A stretch of DNA of 64,000 bases, taken from NCBI GenBank assembly GCA_973895155.1, contig OZ316899.1, positions 5,335,241 through 5,399,240 of the forward strand, written 5' to 3'. Positions 11,388 to 45,900 of this stretch are shown one piece after another. Under the pieces are notes generated by a model. That model saw only the letters and a program-made list of their open reading frames with translations, did not search any database and was not told where the DNA came from. The translations under genes were made by a program, and so were the position numbers. How positions within the stretch are numbered: the first letter of the stretch is position 1; the number at the start of each line of letters is the position of its first letter. This DNA comes from Marsupella aquatica. Taxonomy: Eukaryota; Plantae; Marchantiophyta.

Positions 11388-14300
11388 ATGTCATACCTCA
11401 AACTAATTGCATACAATTCCCTAGTTTCACAAATGCAGGTTGGTGCCACTTTGTTGATGTTGAATTTGCAGGGAGTTTTCAACACTTCAGACGTCCATAC
11501 AGATGCACTATTCCAGCTATTCCACAAAAAACTCTTGCCCCGACCAAACACTCTCCCTGGGTGTGTGAGGGAAGCTAAGAAGTTGTTAACCTCAATTGGA
11601 TTGGCTTTAGAGACTATCCACATGTGTCCAAGTGGTTGCATCCTATACAGAGGGACATACTCTGAGCATACAGAGTGCCCAGAGGCACAATGTAATCTTC
11701 CATGGTACCGACCGGATACCATCGGCAAAAAGATCCTAGAGAAGGTGATGTCCTCCTCCTCTTGGCGGTGTTACATTTGTTAGAACGTAGTTTTGCCCAT
11801 TTTCCTCGTCATTTCCGACGTACGCACACGTACGTCCTTTCTAAAGACGTAACTTACGTCTCCAAATCACCAGTTAGTTTTTACGTCGTCTACTACATGG
11901 TACACATATATTTACGTCGTTAATTAAGACGTAAACTGAAGTAGCCGATGTTACTAACATCACTGAGAAACTTTACATCGTATGTTATATTGTACCGGTG
12001 TATTTACGTCGTGTGAGACGACATTAACTTTGATTTAACGTGATGCTTGTAACTCTGTTTATGGCAGGTCTTCAGGTATTTCCTGATCACACCCCGACTA
12101 CAGCATCTTTATCGACGGAAACATTTATCGGCACTTCAAACATGGCATGCTAAGAACAAATCTCCACCAGGGATTATGCGGTATCACCACGATAGTCCAG
12201 CATGGAAGCACATTGACAGCACTTGGCCGGATTTTTCTAGGGAGCCAAGGAACGTTTGATTGGGTTAGCAATAGATGGGGTAAACCCATACAAGCAACGA
12301 CGGAAGCCTAAGTCCATATGGCCAGTTCTTTTGCTCAATCAAAATATCCCTCCATGGTTGGCGATGAAGAAGGGTCATGTTCTCCTCCTTGCTATCATTC
12401 CGGGTCCTCAGGCCTGTAAAAATCCAGACATTTGTTTGGCTCTAGCTTATGAAGAGTTGCAGAAGCTATGGGAGTTTGGGGCAGTGACCACAGATGTGAC
12501 TCGTACACCGGATAATGGGAGGACATTTAATATGAGAGCAATGATCACCCATTGCACCACGAATGGTCCAGGTAATTCTCAGTCATAGAAATAATTGAGA
12601 CATACATTGTGCATGGTTCTATTGCATGTGACAATGGTTTTTGGCCTGAATGTTTTAAATGTCATTGACAGGTATGGGCACAATATCTGGCTTGAAAGTG
12701 GCCGGTTATTCAGCTTGCCCTTCATGTGGTCCTGAGTTGCATGGGAGATACTCTAAGCGTCTGCACAAAACCACATATGAGGGCAGTAGGGTTCGTTTGC
12801 CAATGGACGATATATTGCAACATAACACCACACATTGGGCTGAGACTGAATTTAGGCCATGTCCCAATGGGCCTTCAGCTAAGGGTCAAATTCAAATGGC
12901 GGAGAAAGTGGAGGCAAAGTTACTTCAACCTAAGCACTGTGGTGTCAATCGTCGCTCAGCTTTGTGGGACTTGCCTTATTGGAGGGTAATCAAAATAAAA
13001 TTTGGCTTCTTTTAAGTTAGTGACTTGTAGTATTCTCTTTATGAATTTCTCACTAGCAAAACCTGATTCTCCACTCATTTTGCAGATCCTCCAGATACGA
13101 TGGTTGTTGGACCCCATGCATATTGAAGTGAATGTTGCCAAGAATATAGTGAAGCACATTTATGGGAGGAATGATACTTGTGGGGTCCGAGAGGATGCAA
13201 AGCAAGTTGGAGTGGTGAAGAGTTGTTGGATAACTCAAGATGGGGAGAAGCCACCTGCTCCTTGGGTTTTGCCAAAACAGATTTTGAAGGAGATGAACGG
13301 GATGATATGTGAAATGAAATTCCCTAGCCATTACGGAGCCGGCTTCCGTGGGTGCACTACAAGGGAAGACCACATACCCCCAATCGGCTTGAAGTCTCAC
13401 GATTATAACAAGTTGATTCAGCATGTGTTACTTGGTGTCTTGCGTTGTTGTGATGATTCTAGAGAGCGACGCCTACTCCGACATACAGTATATGAGTTGT
13501 GCTCCATTTTCAGGTTAGCATAGTCTTGTTGGCATATATTTATGATATGATCATTGCATATGTCTATCATACTAACAATTTGACAAAATCTTGAGTACCC
13601 CTTACAGGTGGGTATGCGCCAAGGAAATAAAGGAGAGTGAGATTCCCGAGATGAGGGAACGGTCTGCCCGTGTTATGTGCAATATGGAGAAGGTGTTTCC
13701 CCCATGTATTTTTGACATGCAATTGCATTTGCTATGTCATCTGGTGGATGAGGTAGCCATTGCTGGTCCAGTGCATGCGCGGTGGATGTATTGGGTAGAG
13801 CGGTTCATGAAAGTGCTAAAGCCTCGGGTGCACCAACCCGCTCGACCAGAGGGAAGTATGGCAACAGGGTATATTATGTCGGAGTGCCTATTCTAGTCAA
13901 GCGGGGTGATAGGGAGTTTGGACACACAAGCTCCCACAACTTGGGAAGAGGCACAAGATGATGACAATGGTGGGTTGCGAGTGATGGGCGCGTCAAAGAA
14001 GCGATCATTATATGATGACATTTTTTGCCGACAAATCCACAATTATGTGTTGGAGAACCGCACCAAGATGTCAGATTGGAGAGAGTTGTATAGGTAGGGA
14101 CGTAATCCTTCATGTTGAGTCCTACTTAGATTTGAAATGTACATTCAAGGTGGTTGGCACAAATTGGGATCTAATGTATCTGTGACCCAGTACTTGCAGG
14201 GCATGGGTGGAGTAGCAGCGGATAGGGGCAGCACGAGACCGTGTTCATGCATCATTTCGCATATGGGCCTTGGAGCGCATGGAGGGGCTCCTTGCAGTGC

Positions 14301-31215: not shown

Positions 31216-32798
31216 CTGTCCAAGCAATTTCAAACAAAATAGTCACAACCCTAGTCTAAGACATGAAGGGGAACGGTTTGAGATAGAAAACTAAAGTTAC
31301 TTGCTTGATTGTTTAGACTATGTTCATAGCTTTGGCTCTTGTTTTCCGCCCTGATTTTATCTGCTGCACATGAAACAATATTCTTTGTTATTCAGTTCAT
31401 AGTACCCAGAAAACCCTCAGATTCCATTTGCTATGGGTCTCTTACAAGAAGCTACAATCGTTTCCTGGAGTTCGAGCACTTGGGAGGAAGAACAAGGGAT
31501 TCAGTTGTACTGCTGGACCATGGAGTGTTTCTCCTACTTCAGTTTGAACAAGGCTCAATAGTTGCCTGAATGAAACACGAGACACAGACTCAGGAGTAAA
31601 GGGAAAGGTGCCAAGCTCAAGAGGTGTCAATGGGGTACGGGTCACCTTGCTAGCTAATTCACTCTCCTGCTTCTGTTTCTTCCTCACATGCAGTTCATTG
31701 AGGTATTCTATGTTGCGAGCAAACAGGAGATTTGATAGCGAGCATATTTTGATAGCGAGACAATAATGGTTCCAAATTTCAGTTGCTTTTTGGTGCCCTT
31801 TACATTTTTTGTGTTTTTTTAAGGATTCCAGATTACTAGCGAGCTCGCTAGCAAAAAGGGAGACCCCAAAAGGGATGTTACCAACCAGGTAGTTGATAGC
31901 GAGTCACTTGCATGTAGAAAAATAGGGGTCATGCAGGAATTATTTTGCTCGTGCGAGTAAAAATTTTACTGTTTGCTCGCACGTTACAATTACCCCAGTT
32001 CATTGGTCAATGTGGGATCCAACGCTGGCATTTAACACTAGTACATTTTTGCAGTTTTTCCGATGCTTCGGTCGCGGCCTAAAAGAGGCGTCCCATGCCC
32101 TTTCTATCGGACATGTCCGATATTTTAAGGAACGGTTTGTCCGATATAACACGCTTCGGAAACTATGGTTCCGATTTTAATAACATCGGACCACGTTACC
32201 CATACAAACTACATCGGACAATTACCGATGACGATCAAGTCGGACTTAGGTTCAAAATGTTCTATGGAGGTTTCCAATACCCATTCAATGGCATCCTAGA
32301 TCCGATACAAAACATATCGGAAATATTCCGATGGTAATAAAATGGCATCACCCTTCCGAAGGTGGTCCAATGGCTGAGGTATGGCAGTGTGTATCCGACA
32401 CAAGAAAGATGGGAAATGAGTCCGATGTGGTTAGTATGGCAAATGTGGTCCAATTCGGTGAATATTGGATAGACCGGGTTTTTGGTTTTTTGAATGTTTT
32501 AGGTGAAGGTTTGATGGTTTTGGTTATTTGAAACATGGGAAAGGGTATGGGAAAGATGGGAAATTTTCAGTATGCATGCATGGAGGATTTCCATCTGATC
32601 AAAGGACTTGAGTGAACAATATATCATTCATTCAAGAAATTCATATTTGAAGCTTGCATGCATGTTAATCTTTTGAGGTACATATATGTGTGGAGTAATT
32701 GTTATAATAGGTAGAACCAGATATATATATATATGTGATTCATTAATGCCGATAGAAGGAAAACATAGAGGGGTTTTACCTACGTAGGGTTGCATGTA

Positions 32799-35700
32799 CT
32801 ATAGAGAGGGGTCCAAATCCTCCACTATGACTACATTTGGTTGATCCTGAACGGTGGATCGCGAGTGAGGGATGTAAGGCATGACAATGGACCACTCTGG
32901 GTCATCCGGATAGGGAAGATAAAATGCTTGCTCCAAATGATGGGGAAATGCAAATGGATCTGACGTTCTCCAACTGGAACTAACAACACTACGTGCACTT
33001 GTCTTCAACCGTGTGAAACCACAAGCATCCTCTTCACAAGTCCGGTTGTGGCCGACTTGATTCATTCAAAACCACTTGCACTTCAACACCACCTCCTCCA
33101 AGGTTGTATGTTGTTGATACTTGATGGTAAGAATCTCCTCAATTTTCCCATAGTGTGCCACAGTACTACGTATGGGATTTCTATCAGATGTGCTACTCTG
33201 TGAATCTTGGATGAACCACCCCATCACCCCACAATCTTGTGTTGCTGCCCTCTTCATATCAAGATGTTCAACTCGGAAATGCCTCCCCTTTGACCACATG
33301 GCTGTTCGAGTTGTGACTGTAAGTAATGGACCATGAACCAAGGTGCGCATGTCACCGGTGGCCTCTGGGAAGTGCAAAACACTCTCACCCCGACCCAACA
33401 AGGCATCAATCTCTGCCAACTTCTCCTTCATATATGGGAGAAACTTTGGGAAGAGGCGTGGCCGTCGACTATTCTGCTTCTCCTCCTCATAATAGGTACT
33501 CCACTCCCCTGCAATCTCTGGAGAGTTATACAACATGAATGTGGTGAGCTGGAGGCGCTCACCAGACCCTAGTAGTCATTCTCCCTTTGCTCCTGTGAGT
33601 CTATCATCCTCATAGTCTGCCTCTCGTGCTGCTTCATCTGTCCATCCCCTTGGAGCATTTGGATCAAGTGTAGACACAATATTTGTACAATAGAACATAC
33701 TTTCTGCTCCAAGGTGACGCTCAGCAATGCTACCTTCCACCCTTACTAGCACGGTTTGACACATACCCCTTCATGACTCCCATGTACCGCTCTATCCAAT
33801 ACATCCAACGACAATGTACAGGGCCTGCAATTGCCACTTCACGCACTAGATGTATGAGAAAATGAACTTGACCATCAAAGAAGGAAGGAGGGAGTGCTCG
33901 CTCCAACTTGCACACTACCTCCACTCCAAACACCTCCATGGCAGCAATCTCATCCTCATTCACCTCCTTTTGACACACCCACCTCAACAACCTACCCAAT
34001 GACCAAAGGGCATCTCGAAGATCCTCGCTGCCCAATCCGATAATAGCAATTGGAATAACATGCTGCAAAAGGCGATGGTAATCATGGGTCTTCAAGAAAG
34101 CTGGCCACTTTGGAGAGTCATCTCCACCAAATGCCTTGCGGAGATTGGCACCATACCCTGTAGGAAACTGCATTGACCCTATACATTTGCGAAACTCTGT
34201 CCGCTCATTCCTCGTCAAAACCCATGGGGGGTGGATAGTAAGGGGATGATCAAGATCATCCATAGATGGCCAAAAATCATGAAGTCCATGCATCCCCATC
34301 TCCTCACAACTCTCTCTCCAGTTGCTGTTTTTCTCCCCATATAGATGTCGGATCAATGACCTCCCAACATTTCCCTCAATATGCATAGGGTCCAATAGAT
34401 GGTTAATGGGCATGTGGCCCCAATATGGAAGTTGTGATAGTGCTGACAAACGCGTCATTCCGCATCTAGCCAAGGGTATTGGGTCAATGACCCTCTCCCA
34501 TACCTCCTTCCAATATGCTGGGTCTTTTCGCTGAGGTTGAGGATGTGTATCTGGTTGACCCAACTCTGTGTCATACAAAAATGGATCATACCTCCATTCA
34601 TGCTCTTCTGGAAGATACTTTGTGTGACCAATGTAAACAATCTTCCGTAGGGTGGTAGACTTTGGGCGTGCCACTCCCTCCAAATCGGGACCACAAGTCG
34701 GGCAAGCTCGGTATCCAGAAGTTTGCAAGCCAAAAACATATCCAAACCCTTGAACAAGAATGGTAACAAAACACCACAAATGTTTCAAAGTAAGTTCATT
34801 TTCAGAAGCAACGTACCTAAGGGACAAATCCTATTTAAAATTGAGCATACATTTATAGATAGACCATGCAATGCAAAGCCATATGTACGTAATTTAATTT
34901 AAAGGAAGTGCCACAAATCCATATTCATACCTGGAAGATCATGCATGGTCCACATAAGAATGGCCTTCAACTTAAACTGACGGGGTAAGCCCCCTGTATG
35001 CACTCGGCCATCATAGCAATCCACTCCTCTCCATAGCTCTTTTAGCTCCTCAATCAATGGTTGCAAGTATACATCAATTTGCTTCACTTGCTTAGGACCA
35101 GGGATAATCATGGACAGGATCAAATGACCCTTCTTCATGGCCATCCATGGTGGGATGTTGTAGTTAGTGAGGACTACTGGCCATACTGAGTATGGTTGGG
35201 TCTTGCCAGCCATTGCAAAAGGGCTTATACCATCTGACGCCAAACCAAGGCGAACGTGACGAGGATCAGTCTTGAAATCACCCCAACAATCCTCCACAAA
35301 TTTGTTTGCAAGGGAGTCAACCATCATGCGCATGGTAAGTGGATCCAAACTCATGTCTGAACGATGTTGGGAATGCCATATCATATACTTAGCCAACTCT
35401 GCACATCGAAACTGGTGACGCAAACGAGGAATAAGGGGAAAGTACCTCATAACCTTTTGAGGTACTTTTCCAGTCAACATATCCTCACAATATCTTGGGG
35501 CGTTGCAGGTGGGACATGTCACTGCATCCTTGTGCTCTTTCCTGAACAAAACACAATCATTCACACAAGCATGTATGACTTCATACTTGAGTCCTATGGA
35601 CTTCAACACTTTCTTTGCCTCTTTCCACGATGCTGGCAAGTTGTTCCCTTCTGGCAACATACGCTCATGCAATGTCCTAAAAATATCATCAAGGAGCAAG

Positions 35701-36101
35701 TTGCTTGCTCCGTGTCTTTGCTGCAAGTTCAGTAATAACATGATTGCCGAAAGTCGAGATAATCTGGACCCCTCAAATATGCGAGTTCGTGCATGCTCCC
35801 GAGCCTCCTCCCACTGTTGGGAATGTGATTCCCGTGGAGGAATGTGACCAGAAGGAGGAGGTAAGTCAATGTCCTCCCAATCACCCATGTCATGATCACC
35901 TTCCCCTACATCCATGAACTGGTGCATCAATTCATCCATAGCCTGCTCCTCATGCACTCTTTCTTGGGGAGCATTAGGTACTTCATGTGGAATGTTTGCA
36001 CCCTCAAAACCTTGACCCCCTTCCTGACCATGCATGGCCTCACGGAGATGTTGTCGCATAGCTCGTGATAGTACCTCAACATCTGGTTGAGCAAATGTAT
36101 T
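32799..36101 (-). pseudogene. TnpD/Tnp2-type transposase of CACTA 2
   Basis: IHACVNDCVLFR, LGLASDGISPF, YNIPPW, HDLPG, LDPMHIEGNV, LKTHDY, RWMYWIERYM; intron ~34750-34930; frameshifts and stops near 33730, 33576 and 33066. Confidence 0.95.
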
Positions 36102-36161
36102 CTATACATAGAACAACAATATTGATATTAGGCCATGGTGGTTAATTAACTTAGTCAATTA

Positions 36162-37217
36162 TTACAGATCCATGTCTTTCTGACCAATAACACATGAAAG
36201 TCTGACTATGTCAAATTTTATATATATACAAAATTGGATGTACATGTATGCATATATGTGCTTTGAAGGATGACAGCGTATGGCCATCTTAGGCGCATCC
36301 CAATCATAGTCATAAAATATCTCCTCACCAGCCCTAATAGTCCGTATGGCTACAGTCATAATATGGTCATCCATATGCTTGACATAGTAATGTGGTGGTG
36401 GTGCCCCAAAAATTTGAACCCACTCTACATTTGGTTCAAGTCCTCTCTCTCTCCCTTTGGTACTATTGATGTACCCAGCGATGTTATCACATCGCACAGG
36501 ATCACCATCAATCATTCTACAATGCCAAGGCCTCTTGAGGACCTCATCCGGATCAGAATCCATCTGCAATGCATACACCCCCCATGCTGGTTGTTGCCGC
36601 AAAATAATGTTCCAGTTTTTGGCAGTGTATATGGCACCAATATAAGGAAACAAGTGCTCCCCATCATAACCTCTTCGCCACGGCTTTGGATGGACCACAA
36701 TGTCCTCCATAGCAAATAACCCAAGTCCTACATCAACACCAAGGGAGGATGGCTTGACTATCCATTGACGCCCCCATATCTCTACAGGGGCATCGGTGGG
36801 TATGCCAGGAGTGATTCTAAATATCTCAGATGAGAAATCCTTCAAGACAGTCATTGCCTTTCCTGTGAGATATGACAACCCCAACCTACCCTCCACTACC
36901 ACATAATCCTCACCCCGCTCTACCAAAGCAGCATGGACCAAATTTGGGCCTAGGGACTCGTGAGTGGCCAAAGGTTCATAATGTCTCCGATATCTATGGG
37001 AGCGAGGTCGGGTGCGTAGAACCCTAGTACATGGAGGTGCCTCTGGCTCACCCATCTCCGTGTCCTCCATTGGTCCCGGTATAGTTTGGGCCTCAACATG
37101 GGGAGGATTATGAGGAAGGGGTGTAGAAGTTGATGCAAGTAGCCCTCTTGCACAACCCAAAAATGTCTCTAGCCACAGGTCATTAGAGACCAATGGACGG
37201 CGGGGCCTATGGGGCAC
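36162..37217 (-). CDS. SET-domain protein (putative lysine methyltransferase); domain ~36300-36764
   Basis: VKPS..GLGLFA, PYIG, IDG, NIAGYINS..PNV, A.RTIRAGEEIFYDY: SET motifs I-IV in order with no stop or frameshift. Confidence 0.88.
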   Translation of the reverse strand: MPHRPRRPLVSNDLWLETFLGCARGLLASTSTPLPHNPPHVEAQTIPGPMEDTEMGEPEAPPCTRVLRTRPRSHRYRRHYEPLATHESLGPNLVHAALVERGEDYVVVEGRLGLSYLTGKAMTVLKDFSSEIFRITPGIPTDAPVEIWGRQWIVKPSSLGVDVGLGLFAMEDIVVHPKPWRRGYDGEHLFPYIGAIYTAKNWNIILRQQPAWGVYALQMDSDPDEVLKRPWHCRMIDGDPVRCDNIAGYINSTKGRERGLEPNVEWVQIFGAPPPHYYVKHMDDHIMTVAIRTIRAGEEIFYDYDWDAPKMAIRCHPSKHIYAYMYIQFCIYIKFDIVRLSCVIGQKDMDL

Positions 37218-37326
37218 CTATTCATTCACAAATAAACCCAAAATTAATACATGTATGATGATGCGCAATAAGGGGCAACTTGTGTTTCCTCCACAAATTA
37301 GTCCGGTTAAAAGGTAGGGAGCATAC

Positions 37327-37554
37327 CTCATGAGTTGAATGTCCTGGTAAATCACCCTGGTGCCGTCCATGATTCTCAATATGCTCAATGGTCTCCCAAG
37401 CTTGGCAAACAACCATTCCCTTACATCTTACACACCAACATGGAATGGGGCCAAGAGGAGGACGTCGAGGCCTAGCAGGAGGAGGAGCAATATCCCCCTC
37501 AGAAGATGACGAGTCTGAGTCCGAATCTGAGTCTGAACTCCCAGAAGTTGACAT
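37327..37554 (-). CDS. Transposase-associated (CxCxxC..H..H) first coding exon of CACTA 2
   Basis: PCWCVRCKG..TIEHIENHG; ends in a phase-0 donor GAG|GTATGC. Confidence 0.75.
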
Positions 37555-40500
37555 CTGCCCATCATAGGTACACACCTCATCTCAAAATCTCCCTCATATT
37601 AAGTACTCACACAATTGAATTGGAATATATGCAAGCTTATAAGAGGTAAATAAAACATACACACCCACACACACTATACATCTTACCTGAATGATATCCG
37701 TGCTCAACAATGCCTACTAGGATCTTGGCCTTAGGATATATCCTAAGACAATATCCAAAATGTCTGCAAAAGGTGGTACCATGATAAACTTAGCTAGGGA
37801 TGTATTCCCACAAATGTGCCCAACAATGACCAAAAGGTTGGAGCCACAAATTCTACAAGTGTCCACCCTCGTATCAATTTAGGGAGTGCATCATACCTTT
37901 TGGATGCACGGGCTATCACGATGCATATGGCATTGCAAAATTGGACCCTAAAAAAACAAAGACAAAACCAACAACCCAACCCTCTCCAAACAAGTACTGC
38001 ACAATACACACACAAGGTTAATACCCTATGTTTGGCCTCCCACAAAATATTGCACATCACATATAACAAAAGACCATCACATATTGGCAGGAAGTACAAT
38101 ATAATGGCAACAACATACCAGCCTATATATATATATATGTTACCCCAAAATTTGTCCGTTTGGATAAATTGCCGCACTACAATGTAACCATCCGATCAAA
38201 AACCACGTTGGCGAAACAAAACCGGGACCACCCAAAGCAAACCTACATTTCATTGCAAGTAAATGATGAAGTTAATATCCTTACAAAAACACTAATCCCA
38301 ATTACCAACCCTATTCCCAACTACTATCCCATTACAAATTCATCGGAAACATAGTCGGATGCCAAGCGGCAGTGAATGTCCGATGCTGGGACGAGGGGTC
38401 CGATTCTTATAGGATCGGAAATTTGTGATGTTTCTAGTATCGGACATACAATCGGATAGTTAATTAGGTCGCCCGACTGAAGTGCGAGTGCACCTCAATC
38501 GGGCATTGTTTCGGAAGAGTGTCGGGCGGACTTGGCGAGCTCAATTGCACGAGCTCTGGAGGTCATGGCTATGGAGGGAAATGGTGGGGCACCGGGGGGG
38601 ATGGAGCTGGTCCATCTAAAAGCTTTGCTCTCATAATGGCAGAGGTTTTCAGGACACAAGCTGGGCTGTCTGCTGAATCTGCAGAGAAAGTTGCCCATTT
38701 GACTCAAGGGCTGATTGACTCCTCCGACAGAGCTGTGATCAGGCTAGAGAAGGAGAGGAAAAGAAAGAGGAAGGAGGAGAGTAGGAGGCCAGAGGAGACT
38801 CTCTCACCACGACAGAGAGAGAAGAGCCTCAGGAAGGAGGCTCGAGCTACAGAGAGGCTTCGAATTGAGGAGGAGAGACTGCGTGCAAAGGAGAGGGCAA
38901 AACGGCCAAAGCTGGTTCTGAATGAGGGAGGAGCTCCCACAGCGAAGAGCTATAGGCTCTTCAGGAGTCAGCTGGGGCAGGTCTTAAGGTCACATTTTGG
39001 CCCCTTAGACTATTGGGGAAAGAAGAAAGAAGAGGAGCGATTTCGGGTTAGGGAGCAAGTGAAAGAGAGATTCAGCAATGGCTCGTTCTTAGATGATCGA
39101 TTTCTGAACAGGAAAATCTCTGTATCACTTGCAGATCATCGAAATCACATTAGGGAGAAGATGAGGAAGTACCTGCTTGAATGTCAGGATGAGGAAGAGG
39201 TGATCAGGAAGGGAAATCCCTCGGATGACATAGACGCTGATGCCTGGTCCGCTTGGATTGAGGCTGAGCTGCAGGTCCGTGCTTGGCAAGCTCGTCGTCA
39301 CTGGCAAGCTGAGGTTTCTGAGGTAGAGAAGAGGGCCCTTGCAGGAGAGACTGCTGACATCCACCCTCTGCAGTGCAAAGCAATTGAATGGGAGCGGAAA
39401 CCGAAACAACTTGGAGACCCACCCCTGGCAATTCAGAAGGCAATTGATAGAGTGGACAAGAGACCAAAAGTGACTCACCGGATGGGACAAGGTGGATCCC
39501 TTCGTCTCAAAGCAGAGTTTGTGAGTTCTCTGCCCCCTCCTCTTTGCTCAATTCCTACCTCCTTGCAAGGTCCTTCCTCCTCCTGATCACCTTAGGCACC
39601 AATCCAAGGTAATGCTTGCAGAGCCCCCCCCGCAACTACCATTCTTATGCTAGTGTAAACAGTGTGGCTGTCTAGCTTATTAATTGTCGTGGATTTTCAG
39701 TTTCCCGTTTTTTCTGCTGAGTCCGATGCATGTCCAACTTCAATTTAGTCGGAAGCAACATCGGATGCTGTATTATGGTTAGTTGTAGGGCCGTGTCCGA
39801 TCCAGGTCCGATTACTTTACCATCGGACATTGTATCGGACTCAAAGTGTCGGGTTTGCTTCCGATGTGGCAAAGAGGGGTCCGATGCAATTAGGATCGGA
39901 TAAATTCAAATTTTTGAATTATCGACGAGTGTTATTGGGTGAGCGGCCATGATTCATGCCAAGTGCTTAATTAGGTTATAGGTAGGGTTTTTCTGAAAGT
40001 GAAGGGGGATGATTTTTAAAACTAAGATCAAGGGTTGATGAAGGGTTTAATTTTTGGAAGTAATGTATATATTGAGTTTGAAAGGAGTATTAATTTGTTG
40101 GAGTGCAGGAGCGAGAGCATGGACGCCCAATCTTGCCAATCGAGAGAGAGTTAGCTAAGAAGCTTGGACCGCGGGCTCTCAAGCTTCGCATGGAGGAGGA
40201 GTTGGGGTCAGTAAGTTTATTCAATACCGTTAATCCTAAGGTGATCAATTCATCATTGAGTTGTTGTAATGAAGTTTTTGGTAACATTAACATATTGGTT
40301 GGTGCTTGCGTATATATATGGATGTAGGGCTCGGAGAAGGAGTCAGAGAGTTCTGGCGAGGAGGAGGGATCGGACAACTCAGATTCAGAATCTGAGGGTG
40401 CAACATCCCGAGGGCGTGGAGGTAGTCAGTCTAGACAGAGGACACATGATGGTGGTAGGGGTCGTAGTGTTCGAGGAGGTAGTAGGGGTGCTCGCGTAGG

Positions 40501-40863
40501 AGGTGCATCTCGCCATACAGTGGCTGGTGGGGCTGGTGGGGCTCACCGGTCTGCTCCTGGTAGGGGGGTGGTAGTAGGGCACCCAATGGTTTGCACCGGT
40601 CGACTTCTGGTAGGGGGGTGGTAGTAGGGCACCCAATGGTTTGCACCGGTCCACTTCTGGTGGAGGGGCTGGTAGTAGGGCACCTGGTGGTTCTCACCGG
40701 TCCGCTTCTGGTGGGGGGGGGGGCAGGGTGGGGGTGGCACCGGGGCCCCTAGTGGTTCTCATCGGGCAGGTTCTGGTGGGGGGGCAGGGACCAGGGCTCC
40801 TGGTGGTTCTCATCGGGCAGGTTTTGGTGTGGGGGGGGTAGTGGGGCACCTGGTGGTTATCAC

Positions 40864-42922
40864 TGTAATGTTGTACATTAGTTAGAAATGATGGAAATTT
40901 TATAAATTTTGAACTTTTTCTAACTCAAAGGTGTAGTCTAGTTACCTTTTGTAGCAATTTAGATCAACTGAACACTTTAGCTAATGCTATCCTTCATTGG
41001 AGGTTATTGTATTGGATAAGGATCAATTATATAAATCATTGCTCTTTACATGCTACCAAGAAAGAAGACTGGACATCATTGGAGAAGCAATGCACACTAG
41101 AAGATTCAAGAACTGGCCTCCAAAATACTTCTTCAGCAAGAATGAGCTCTGTGTGCAATTATCACGATCAACCGATCTTTGCTATTTTAATTAAATAGCT
41201 ATCATGGTCAGAAAAGTCTCATACTTTTTTAGAAGTTAGTAGTTACGTAGTAAATTCATCCCTGAAAGTTTCATCTCAAACCGACGTGTGGTTTGAAAGT
41301 TAGAATTAATTTAGTTTTGCTATTTTTCACATAGCCGCGACTTCGCCAACGCTTTCTGAAGCGTTCCTTGTATTTTTGGACGTTTTCTGAAGCGTCCACC
41401 CAAGACCACGACGCTTTCTGAAGCATCCGCCACCCAACCAGCTGTACTCCGACGCTCTGCAATCCACCCGACACCGCGACGCTTTCTGAAGCGTCTACCA
41501 AGTTTCGACGTTTTCTGAGGCGTCCGCCACTCCAAGGCGACATCGACACTGACGCTGACTGAAGCGTCGCACCCGGAGCCCAGAAGACGGACGCTGCGAC
41601 CAAAACCTCAAAATTCAGCCGACGCTTTCTGAAGCGTCCACAAAAGTCCTTTGTAGTTTTGGACGCTTTCTGAAGCGTCCACTATGTTCCCGACACTTAG
41701 AAATATTTTCGTTTTTCGCACTTTTATAACACCGCGCCACTTTCATCGATTTATTTGAGACACTTAGAGATCTCAGAAAAGTCTGAAACTTTGTCAACAT
41801 AGAGATTATATGTAGTAGATTACCCTAGAAAAGGTTCAACTCCTTTCGACTTTTAGTTTAGAAGTTAAAATTAGATTAAGATCACTGTTTATTAGTTTTA
41901 CCGCAAACACCGACGCTTTGCAAAGCGTCCGCTCAAACCTCGACGCTTTGAGAAGCGTCCCCTGCATTTTTGACACTTTCAGCAGTATCCATTCACTTTT
42001 CAAGGATGACCGTCATTAAGTTTATTCAAGACCCTTTAGATATGAAAGGGCACGTCCTTTCAGTCTCTCAGTCTCCTTGCGTTCCTGCTAGCCTATATGA
42101 AGTAGAATTTGTGTCATTCTCGAGTGGAAAGAAATAAAGTAGTGCCTGTGGCATGTGCTACAACACTGGAATCACCTTTGCAAAGCTTTCGTGTGTCTTT
42201 GTATGGTATGGAGCTTGCAAATGCAAAGGAATTCTTCTCCCTTCCTTGGTCTGAATGATTGAGAGTTTAGATCATTGAAGTAAAATTACTTGTATGAAGT
42301 TGAATCTCAGAAGTATGAGGGAATAGATTCCTTAAGTGGTGACAACCCATCTTCTTGAGTTCTTGATGCATAGTTTTTGGCGTGACATTGCTTGTGTATG
42401 GGATGCAAAGATTGTTACTCACCAATTACCTGTGACTTCAATTTGATCATGATGGTGTTTATTATTCGTGACTCAGAGTACCGACTGGATATCAAAGTGA
42501 TTGATTACTAGTTTCTTCTGAGTACCTTTGGAAGGAAAAGTTGAGACGTGTTGACGGCATCATCCTAGTACAGTAATCCCTTCCAGAAATGTTCTTACGG
42601 ATTTACCACCCAAATCACATCAAATGAAGTATTGATAAAAAGTTACCTTGGTGTTTTCCAGACTCCCTCATCATCTCTCAAGATTTCATTGTGTTTTGTT
42701 ATTTGTTTCTATTTTATTAATTGCATTTAAAATGTTAAGCAAACATTCAAATCTATGCCTTGCTGAGCAACCATAGTAAAAGGCTCAAACCTATGTTTTT
42801 GTTACCTTAGTCATTCATAAGTGTTAAATGATAGAAAATCATTCCTTTCTTGTTCTTCCATGGGATCGAATACCGAGTTTTGGGCATTAAATGCTGATTT
42901 ATGTCCTTAGTGCAATACTACA
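40864..42922. mobile_element. Solo LTR, 2,059 bp
   Basis: TGTAATGTTG...CAATACTACA ends and a perfect 5-bp TSD ATCAC (40859-63, 42923-27). Confidence 0.92.
41345..41965. repeat. Dispersed palindromic 18-mers GACGCTTTCTGAAGCGTC inside the solo LTR
   Basis: About 10 copies or variants separated by 14-60-nt spacers, with one longer gap. Confidence 0.85.
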
Positions 42923-45900
42923 ATCACCAGTCCGCTTCTAGTGGGGGGGGTGGCACCGGGGCTCCTAGTGGTTCTCGCCATTCAGGGGCTGCAGGTGGCG
43001 GGAGTAGTGGGGCACATGTTGCTTCTCGTCATTCAGGGGCTGGTGGTGGGGAGGGTAGTGGGACCCCTGCTGGTTCTCACCAGTCAGTTGGGGATGGGGG
43101 AAATGCCCCAGCTGACCAGTTAGGGGCCAACCAGGGTACTACGAGCGTTGGAGGCAGTGGCGGTGGTGCGAGTGGGTCTCACCAGTCGGGTGCCATCGGG
43201 GGTGATGGCTCTCACCACTCTGGCACCCAAGTGGGCAGTGGGGATGCATCCTTTCATACTTGCTCTGCTGGTGGGGGTGCTGCACCGCCTTCACATGACT
43301 CAGGAGGTGTGTCTGGTGGTGATGCCCGTGGAAGTAGTGGTACAGCAGGTCCTAGCACCACAAGTGCAGGTGGGTCACATGCCCCCATTGACGAGGCCCT
43401 AGAGGTAGTGCCAGCTGCTAGTACCCCACCATCAAGATCTCACACCCGTTCCAAGAAAAGGAAGGGACGACATGCACCAGCATATGGATAGGGCAGCCTA
43501 GGATAGGCCCATATATAGGTAGGCATTTTGCCGATTGACTTAGAGTACACTTGTGCATTTAGTACTTACCATGTTCATTTGGCAAGGCCAGGCCATTGAT
43601 CCTCTTTTGTATATCTATTTTGGGGTCTCCCCTTTTTGATTATATATTTATACCTTCTTTGCCTACACACAGATGTTGGGGTCTATGTGTGTCACCATCT
43701 TAATACCCTAATTCAGCCCCAAATTAAATCCAATAAAAACCCCAAATTTATGAGCCCTACTCTATTGCTTCTGATCTGCTTCCAATACTAGATTTGACGC
43801 TCAGTCCAATACACATTCCATTGCTACCATCGTTGCAATGTCCGATGTCACATCCTACGCACTTTCCAATTTGGAAAATAACGCAACGTCCGATAATTAT
43901 AATTACGCAATTTCCAATTTTTAAATAATCAGATAAACCGATATTATAAACATCGGACCATGATCGAATGTGTACAATGCCTTGCATGCGGTAGCTGCCA
44001 CGTTTCCGAAACTCTTCGCATTGGGCGTGATTGTATTCGATACCTTCTACGTCGGTCTATGCGATTACTACTGCATCGGAAAGTCCGATGGAGATCCGAT
44101 TGTTGGTATCCGATGGTTGAAACAACGGACAGTGCGATATAAGAAACATCAGAAACGTGGTTCTCTATGGTGCATTTTTATGAAGGGATCCGATGCCTGT
44201 AGGTCGGAAAATGGCCCAATAATGTACTAGTGTAAGGAGAGTCATCCTCATGAGTACCCTGTTCATGCACGGAAATAGTGTGGTTCACATTGCACAACCG
44301 CATAGCTTGGACTTGGGCTTCTTCCTGCACACACAAATGAAGACATAATTTACTACATGGCCCAAAACCGGAACCTTAGAAACCAAATACCAATTGAAAC
44401 ATGACAGTGTGCCTCTACATACCAGAGCTTGCGTGGACTGCATTTGTTGCACAAGGTGACAACGTCTGCCCAAGCAGGCACTGTTTACCCCGTATGTTCC
44501 CTTCATCTCTTGAATATAGCCACCTTCACCCAATGGCAACTTGTCCTGCCCTATGTTTGGAAGACCCCAACTTTGAACCCAATCTTCCAAAAAGGGTTTC
44601 CCACATGCAAAGCAACAGGGTGCTCTTGTTTTATCCCCCAACAATGTAAATAAACAATGTGGATGATACATGTGGCCACAACTTGCTGGAACCCAGTTGA
44701 AACAATGGTACCCGTGGCAACAAATTGGACAATTACTCGCAAGCACTTCCGTTCCCACTATTGTAGTTGATGTGGGAACAAACCGAGGTTGCAACACTGG
44801 ACATGGATTGGACAAAAGAGACTCCAAAATAACCAGTTCAGACTTTTGAGCTGCTGCAGACAACTCAAGGGGCTTCAGGTCTGCTTCCAACTGTGACTCC
44901 ACAACTTTTAGACGAGCTACCTTCTCTGGTACCCATTCAAAGCGCTTGTTGTTGGTATCTATGAGCTTGTCAAATGTTGCCATCCCCTTTAGAATAGATG
45001 ATTCATTGTTCTTCAACGCCTCCATGTCCTTGTTACCATCCTCCAACTTCTGCCGTAAGATAACAATGTAGCTATCCTGCCCCCCCCCCCCCAGAAAAGA
45101 AAACAGCACATGGCAACATTATTTTGCAGTTCATCATGCATCAATGCCTCGTCCTACCAAACCGAATCCAACCACCCAACAAAACATACATAGCCTACAG
45201 GTATTTTGAGCAACACAAGGACAGGCCTATGGTCTGACAAGCAGTATACCTCCTTGTCTTGCTCTCCCTTCAGCTCCTTGAGCTCCATTTCTGTTGACAA
45301 GTCATCATGTAGGGTGTCCCTTGCCTGCATTTTGCTTCTCACCTCACCCAACTCTTCCTCTAGTTTGTTACGTTGCTCTTGAATGACAGAGATGACTGCT
45401 GGATGATCCCGTTTTGACCCCTCCAAGCTTTTCACAGTCTTCTGAACCGCACTGATGCGCTGATGAGTCTCTTTTAGACTACATTCAATCGTGATGATTT
45501 GCCCATCCAGAATGGACAGCAAAAGACTTCTTGGCAATGCAGGGAGAACAGGAGCCTCGGGCTTGGTAGGGAGAAGCTTTATTTGGGGGACACAAAGGGC
45601 CGCAGCTTCCAATGGTTTGGGACGTGGGCTCCCCTTGCTGCAAGAATCCACTATCCCTGGGTGAGCTTTGTCCCTCGCTGTTTGATTCTTGGTAGAAATC
45701 CGTGGGATGGGCTGTGGGAGACGCGTTGAAGGGTCATCCACAAGCCACTTCAAATTTTCTTCATCAAATTCCGCAGGCACTGGTGGTGAATATAGATGTA
45801 GCCTCCTTACGCAAGGAGGCCCGTCTGGCTTACCCTTACCATCTCGCTCCCATTGGGCAATTTGCCCCTTCAGCTTGGACACTGCATACACACATCAGTC

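Follow-up and report, generated by a model that had tools for sequence, protein, structure and literature searches.

A conserved SET-domain exon within the transposase unit of a decayed liverwort CACTA transposon

Within a 64,000-nucleotide stretch of the genome of the liverwort Marsupella aquatica (GenBank assembly GCA_973895155.1, contig OZ316899.1, positions 5,335,241 to 5,399,240 of the forward strand; hereafter the window), a CACTA transposon holds a SET-domain reading frame in the midst of its transposase exons. Canonical CACTA elements have, to our knowledge, no SET exon, and the locus raises the question of whether the domain is a stray piece of host sequence or a working part of the transposon. 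Histone and DNA methylation are generally regarded as marks that transposons passively receive, and few elements are known to encode a counter-measure, examples being VANC in VANDAL, TET/JBP in elements of fungi, and SET genes in HarbingerS and Plavaka. Our preferred reading is that the window contains a decayed copy of a liverwort CACTA lineage with a selected extra SET exon in its transposase unit, that the unit gives two products, and that one of these is a predicted active methyltransferase; taken as a whole, we consider this reading about evenly balanced between right and wrong, and its parts carry the separate gradings given below.

Element boundaries and gene layout

The original prediction had described the element as a CACTA transposon defined by its terminal inverted repeats and target-site duplications, and the ends bear this out. 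The repeat CACTAGTACATT at 32036..32047 (plus strand) returns in reverse complement as CACTAGTACATT on the minus strand at 44221..44232, with 12 of 12 bases matching, and a TAA duplication stands on each side (32033..32035 and 44233..44235). The 12.2-kb element so bounded (32036..44232) is oriented on the minus strand, as are its TnpD and SET genes. Its terminal 500 bp contain 11 and 8 copies of the motif TCCGAT/ATCGGA at the two ends, where 0.4 are expected. CACTA-type repeats, a 3-bp target duplication, subterminal arrays of short repeats and a Transposase_21 domain thus occur together, as they do in maize En/Spm and plant CACTA elements generally, and the likeness extends to the DUF4218 domain and the CxCxxC...H N-terminus of TnpD. 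Seven further TCCGAT/ATCGGA motifs lie at 37575-38468, between the two divergent genes of the element, and the motif may serve the element ends and a promoter alike.

The transposase unit was read against related loci from other genomes, namely L001 from Calypogeia, L003 and L007 from Riccia sorocarpa (gene models P0020 and P0021), L002, L004 and L006 from Riccia, and L008-L010 from Logan contigs. The first exon, E1 (37327..37554, minus strand), carries the start codon, an acidic, Ser-rich stretch and a CxCxxC...H...H zinc motif, and ends in a phase-0 donor (GAG|gtatgc). E1 has no match in Pfam, and hhalign aligns its zinc motif weakly (P 2e-4, probability 47%) to the CPCxxC...H core in the Transposase-associated N-termini of angiosperm TnpD proteins. 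Intron 1 is a GT..AG intron of 109 nt (37218..37326, minus strand), and the reading frame of the second exon opens directly after its acceptor (aatag|) in the window, L001 and L008; the Calypogeia gene model P0001 joins the same residues. Exon E2 (36162..37217, minus strand) is the SET-domain frame including its stop. A putative intron 2 (36102..36243, minus strand) runs from a donor-like ATGTACA, with its GT at 36243-36242, to the acceptor tatag|, whose position and phase 0 are conserved across the loci compared.

Exon E3, which is TnpD exon A (34931..36101, minus strand), encodes an acidic linker followed by the first part of Transposase_21 (PF02992, 138.5 bits); it is 71% identical to its counterpart in L001 and ends in the donor CAG|gtatga. 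The middle part of TnpD (33730..34827, minus strand) holds the rest of Transposase_21 and DUF4218 (78.7 bits). The C-terminal part (32811..33743, minus strand) is broken. Measured against the continuous 648-aa frame of L008, its reading frame shifts once, near 33740, and is interrupted by stops at 33578-33576 and at 33068-33066, so that the several TnpD lesions claimed in the original prediction are present. Because TnpD has a frameshift and two stops, and because the SET exon has lost its normal stop (below), the window copy is dead and unable to transpose by itself.

On the plus strand, at 38468..39583, is a second, divergently oriented open frame of 372 codons from stop to stop, rich in Lys, Arg and Glu. 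It has no match in Pfam, and it is 50-59% identical to a likewise divergent gene that precedes the SET exon of the Calypogeia element (L001:7372-8371, minus strand); no counterpart was detected in the Riccia loci. The frame may be the counterpart of TnpA. The liverwort element differs from maize En/Spm in that its second gene is divergent in orientation and lacks a Pfam match.

The SET domain and its motif III variant

The frame at 36162-37217 (minus strand) is uninterrupted over 351 aa and scores 33.3 bits (E 6.9e-8) with the Pfam SET family PF00856, for which the cut-off is 22.4, with no other family matched; the L001 exon scores 34.4 bits over profile positions 1-105. All four motifs from which a SET domain had been proposed are found in it: motif I, GLGLFA (36728-36711); motif II, YIGAIY, of the form Y-x-G (36644-36627); motif III, NIAGYINST (36459..36485); and motif IV, GEEIFYDY, with a Tyr of the catalytic type (36306..36329), each on the minus strand. 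The reading of motif III as N-S-T in place of the canonical N-H-S was also correct, with Asn kept and His replaced by Ser, and the variant is conserved across the family. The absence of pre- and post-SET cysteine clusters likewise stands, since the real part of the exon has only four cysteines (aa 22, 63, 233 and 243). This real part, conserved and coding, ends near 36276, and the last 37 codons, from Cys315 onward, are read-through. The ancestral stop, TGA in L001, reads TGT in the window copy, and for this reason the frame runs on.

An AlphaFold2 model of 36282..36935 (minus strand), built with a 54-sequence alignment, gives a 218-aa SET fold with an N-terminal beta extension (pLDDT 91.7, pTM 0.87). 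Foldseek matched the model to at least 236 PDB chains at E <= 0.001, and the top-ranked matches listed were all SET methyltransferases. VIA-align aligned it to 449 SET chains at Z >= 5, the best at Z 11.7 with an rmsd of 2.8 over 126 residues, and yeast SET1, SETD8, EZH2, SET7/9, ASH1L, LegAS4 and PR domains were found at Z 10.6-11.7 over 117-140 residues. Given the Pfam match, the motifs, the model and the fold matches, the call that this frame encodes a genuine SET domain is solid.

The original prediction had also set an intact SET frame against a broken TnpD. The observation is accurate, but we do not take it as a sign of selection on this copy: three lesions in about 3.2 kb predict about 0.9 lesions in a 0.94-kb exon, and the chance of finding none is about 0.4.

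The altered motif III bears on whether the SET protein is an enzyme at all. One alternative is that it is a pseudoenzyme, a selected but non-catalytic binder, for example of a histone tail or of a host methyltransferase complex, that serves targeting or acts as a decoy. The canonical N-H pair is absent in every member of the family, being N-S in most and Q-S in the Riccia clade, and similarity to solved SET enzymes is marginal beyond motifs I and IV; a profile of 22 SET sequences gave only marginal matches to solved structures. Against this, the motif I glycines, the Y-x-G of motif II and the Tyr of motif IV hardly vary across 54 sequences, with at least 90% conservation at these positions, and PR/SET enzymes such as PRDM9 also lack the motif III His. 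A profile of the 54 sequences found the Legionella protein LegAS4 as its best match among solved structures (E 2.6e-5), with all four motifs aligned. LegAS4 (PDB 5czy, 8swi; fold Z 11.3) also has a His-less motif III, YINFS where the liverwort exon has YINS(T), so that GNLTRYINFS aligns with NIAGYINST, and with N-F-S at this position it is an active enzyme: LegAS4 and its strain orthologue RomA methylate H3K14 (PMC10653858; bioRxiv 10.64898/2026.05.29.728679). By this precedent the liverwort variant is compatible with activity, and we regard a pseudoenzyme as improbable, while a predicted methyltransferase is our preferred reading. Unlike the liverwort protein, LegAS4 is a secreted bacterial effector with ankyrin repeats, and at only about 24% identity no common origin is claimed.

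A second comparison, offered by the original prediction, was with the minimal SET protein of Chlorella virus, vSET. It holds as an analogy of fold and setting, since both are small SET domains that lack Cys-rich flanks and belong to a mobile or parasitic genome. It does not hold as a close likeness: vSET is minimal at about 120 aa, whereas the liverwort domain has about 218 aa with an extra N-terminal beta unit, viral SET models match it at the fold level only, and LegAS4 is nearer by profile. A viral, vSET-type origin was considered and rejected on the size of the folded unit and because tblastn against 2.9 million IMG/VR viral contigs returned no viral relative.

Products of the transposase unit

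The original prediction placed the SET domain inside the transposase gene. As a position this is right, and the domain does lie within the TnpD transcription unit of the element; as a statement that SET and transposase form one protein it is less well founded, since the exon has its own stop in most loci. Three splice junctions frame the question. Each of them (E1 donor, E2 acceptor, E3 acceptor) has phase 0 in the window and in L001, L003 and L008, where the E2 and E3 frames begin precisely at the acceptor AG, and E1-E2 and E1-E3 are therefore both in frame. In L001, L003, L004, L006, L007 and L008 the SET frame stops 2-14 codons past motif IV, and a conserved donor-like site (GTAC or GTAT) lies 3' of that stop. 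Phase-0 junctions together with a SET stop ahead of the conserved donor-like site argue for two products from one unit, a Zn-finger-SET protein and a transposase made by skipping E2, as the likeliest arrangement.

In such a scheme, one promoter would give two products with a common exon 1. E1 joined to E2 would encode a Zn-finger-SET protein, about 390 aa long and terminated by the stop in E2 itself, with E2 probably an alternative terminal exon, and E1 joined to E3 and the exons beyond would encode the transposase whenever the SET exon is skipped. Maize En/Spm makes TnpA and TnpD from one transcript by alternative splicing, and the liverwort element would parallel it in probably having more than one product per transcription unit. 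One feature counts against the scheme: with further exons beyond the stop in E2, the transcript would be exposed to nonsense-mediated decay, unless E2 is terminal.

A competing reading is a single fusion, in which the SET domain would lie inside the transposase protein and an in-frame E1-E2-E3 product, Zn-finger-SET-TnpD, would tether or target transposition via chromatin. Every junction being phase 0 suits this as well. In-frame donors do precede the SET stop in L001 (AAG|GTTGTG) and L004 (TTG|GTATCC), in frame with the conserved E3 acceptor, and the Riccia models P0065, P0057 and P0093 join SET-family sequence to Transposase_21, P0065 by using the L004 donor. These two loci are, however, the only ones with an in-frame GT before the stop; L003, L006, L007 and L008 have no in-frame donor between motif IV and the stop, and the window reads GC at the equivalent position, and its conserved later donor would not be in frame. 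Two Riccia models, P0020 and P0021, splice inside motif IV (GEE|) and stay in frame only by deleting the catalytic Tyr, whereas the genomic frames of L003 and L007 continue through (I/V)DY or VEY to a stop; both models look like ab initio artefacts. We judge a fusion unlikely on this balance and retain two products as the preferred reading. Four sequencing runs, from two organisms and none of them recorded as RNA, contain the sequence; their fragmented contigs of a high-copy repeat showed few joints, each in a single contig with short sides, and none at the proposed introns.

Origin, selection and possible role

A word-based search recovered 22 relatives, and a profile search of 1.84 billion representatives recovered only 183, of which the verified ones belong to this family; no mainstream SET family was among the 183. 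The named members are from two liverworts, Calypogeia fissa and Riccia sorocarpa, and more distant ones are from the fern Adiantum nelumboides. The nearest proteins to the window element are from liverworts, at 58-76% identity.

The SET exon is followed by Transposase_21 on the same strand in L001, L002, L004, L006 and L008-L010, and a Zn-finger match lies upstream of it wherever one was searched for among the loci. L003 has a weak TnpD remnant only beside its SET exon, and in L007 the SET exon was found with no TnpD or Zn-finger detected. The loci carrying the exon are mutually 33-71% identical and hence are not assembly copies of one sequence. As far as sequence can tell, the order Zn-finger, SET, TnpD is repeated in each of seven loci read beyond the window, from Calypogeia, Riccia and one further sample, and is no one-off capture.

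A useful reference lies in the window itself, where a second CACTA element, with its TnpD at 11436-13854 (plus strand), lacks a SET exon and is 30-54% identical to the transposase studied here. A tree of TnpD groups the SET-bearing loci in a single clade (94/87), outside which fall this SET-less copy, the fern group and the angiosperm elements, the Adiantum TnpDs being closest to the clade yet outside it; possession of the exon, and this separate placement, set the lineage apart from canonical plant CACTA elements. The inner topology of the clade is that of the SET tree. This agreement between the TnpD and SET trees points to a single old acquisition of the SET exon, followed by co-divergence with the transposase.

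Between the window and L001, dN is 0.186 in the SET core and 0.188 in TnpD exon A (dN/dS 0.17 and 0.12), and dN/dS is 0.52 in the Pro-rich linker; among three Riccia paralogues the SET frame gives dN/dS of 0.19-0.28, all of these being Nei-Gojobori ratios that are approximate because dS is near or above 1 in most pairs. Judged by these alignments, the SET exon is under purifying selection, and neutrality is excluded despite the roughness of the ratios. Conservation and dN/dS had been proposed at the outset as a means of checking the SET exon, and both came out in its favor, with core values of 0.17-0.28 and a dN equal to that of the transposase exon. The exon is, in short, a conserved and selected part of the lineage.

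These results bear directly on the scenario that the original prediction had named as its own refutation, namely that a single CACTA copy recently picked up a piece of a host SET gene, which has since evolved neutrally. CACTA elements do capture host gene fragments, and the window copy is dead, both of which suit such a capture. The marks of Pack-type capture, which are a close host parent, neutrality and a single copy or family, were nonetheless not found. Instead, the same exon occupies the same place in eight loci of at least three taxa, its dN/dS is 0.17-0.28, the SET and TnpD trees are congruent, and no host SET family is nearby among the 1.84 billion representatives, all of which contradicts the scenario and leaves it very improbable. 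Less credible still is an independent host gene that merely lies within or beside the transposon, for which the related single-exon Calypogeia gene P0072, with no transposase within 10 kb, could be cited, but against which stand the position of the exon within the inverted repeats and between two TnpD exons, the phase-0 intron common to the SET and Zn-finger exons, and SET contigs that match the TnpD parts in depth in DNA runs from two organisms.

The read-depth observation can be stated more fully. In contigs of four DNA-type runs from two organisms, bins of the SET core (36343-36736) reach roughly the depth of the TnpD bins, and depth is much lower in the linker part (36737-37327), although contig depth is not copy number. 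A shallow linker and a deep core fit many copies having the core in common.

What a selected SET exon would do for the element can be outlined under the preferred reading. The SET protein would be catalytically active and would methylate a lysine of chromatin or of some component of the transposition machinery, in a way that benefits the element, most plausibly by interfering with the marks through which the host silences it. Bryophyte transposons bear H3K9 and H3K27 methylation (bioRxiv 10.1101/2022.10.24.513474), which gives an anti-silencing role a plausible setting. We further hypothesize, in an extended form that we consider doubtful, that an old land-plant CACTA clade, found in the two major classes of liverworts and perhaps in ferns as well, has its own histone-lysine writer, aimed at the element by the Zn-finger exon common to it and the transposase, and that the mark blocks or overwrites H3K9/H3K27 silencing or prepares chromatin for excision or insertion. 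This would amount to a self-targeted epigenetic counter-defence within a transposase gene, deployed by alternative splicing.

A SET gene on a transposon is not in itself new. A passage of PMC12730594 that cites Kojima and Jurka (Repbase Reports 2014) reports SET genes on HarbingerS, on Phytophthora MuDR and in Helitron captures, and in red algae the Plavaka accessory gene PAG2 encodes a SET domain fused to an N6-adenine DNA methylase (PMC12730594; bioRxiv 10.1101/2025.02.11.637652). Like these, the liverwort element represents a DNA transposon lineage that stably carries a SET gene thought to act on chromatin. Theirs are separate accessory genes in other superfamilies or branches, whereas the liverwort SET is an exon nested in the TnpD gene that has the transposase's first exon in common. 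No description of a SET exon in a land-plant CACTA element was found in the full-text literature searched, whose coverage leaves out many subscription journals and Repbase Reports. SETMAR (Metnase) offers another likeness, with SET and transposase in one transcription unit. SETMAR, though, is a primate host gene with a captured mariner transposase, whereas the liverwort case is a mobile, multi-copy transposon carrying a SET domain, for which a fusion is not favored.

The SET-bearing CACTA lineage seems, by its sequence, to bring its own protein or chromatin modifier. A compact, conserved exon at a defined place in a high-copy DNA transposon makes a tractable land-plant case, and the element has relatives in genomes near that of the model liverwort Marchantia. 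Should the SET protein be active, plants would allow a direct test of whether a transposon can write chromatin marks to its own advantage, and the first exon common to both products would exemplify a transposon that aims an accessory enzyme by alternative splicing. If the protein is inactive, it would be a selected pseudo-SET module with a binding partner worth finding.

Two further groups of related SET genes were noticed. Calypogeia fissa P0072 (L005:10001-11512) is a 503-aa gene with two WRC-like Cys motifs and a SET domain of this family, with NLAGYINS as motif III. It is flanked by ordinary host genes, has no homologues save one near-identical second copy, and is placed by the SET tree immediately outside the clade of transposon copies (84/63), at the end of a long branch, as a possible domesticated copy or donor relic. 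The more distant SET relatives of Adiantum nelumboides (P0140, P0141, P0144 and P0158) also have GYINS in motif III and may be linked to a Ty3 element or to a CACTA. Their gene models span 40-130 kb, and P0140 combines the SET domain with a Tf2-1-type integrase SH3 domain.
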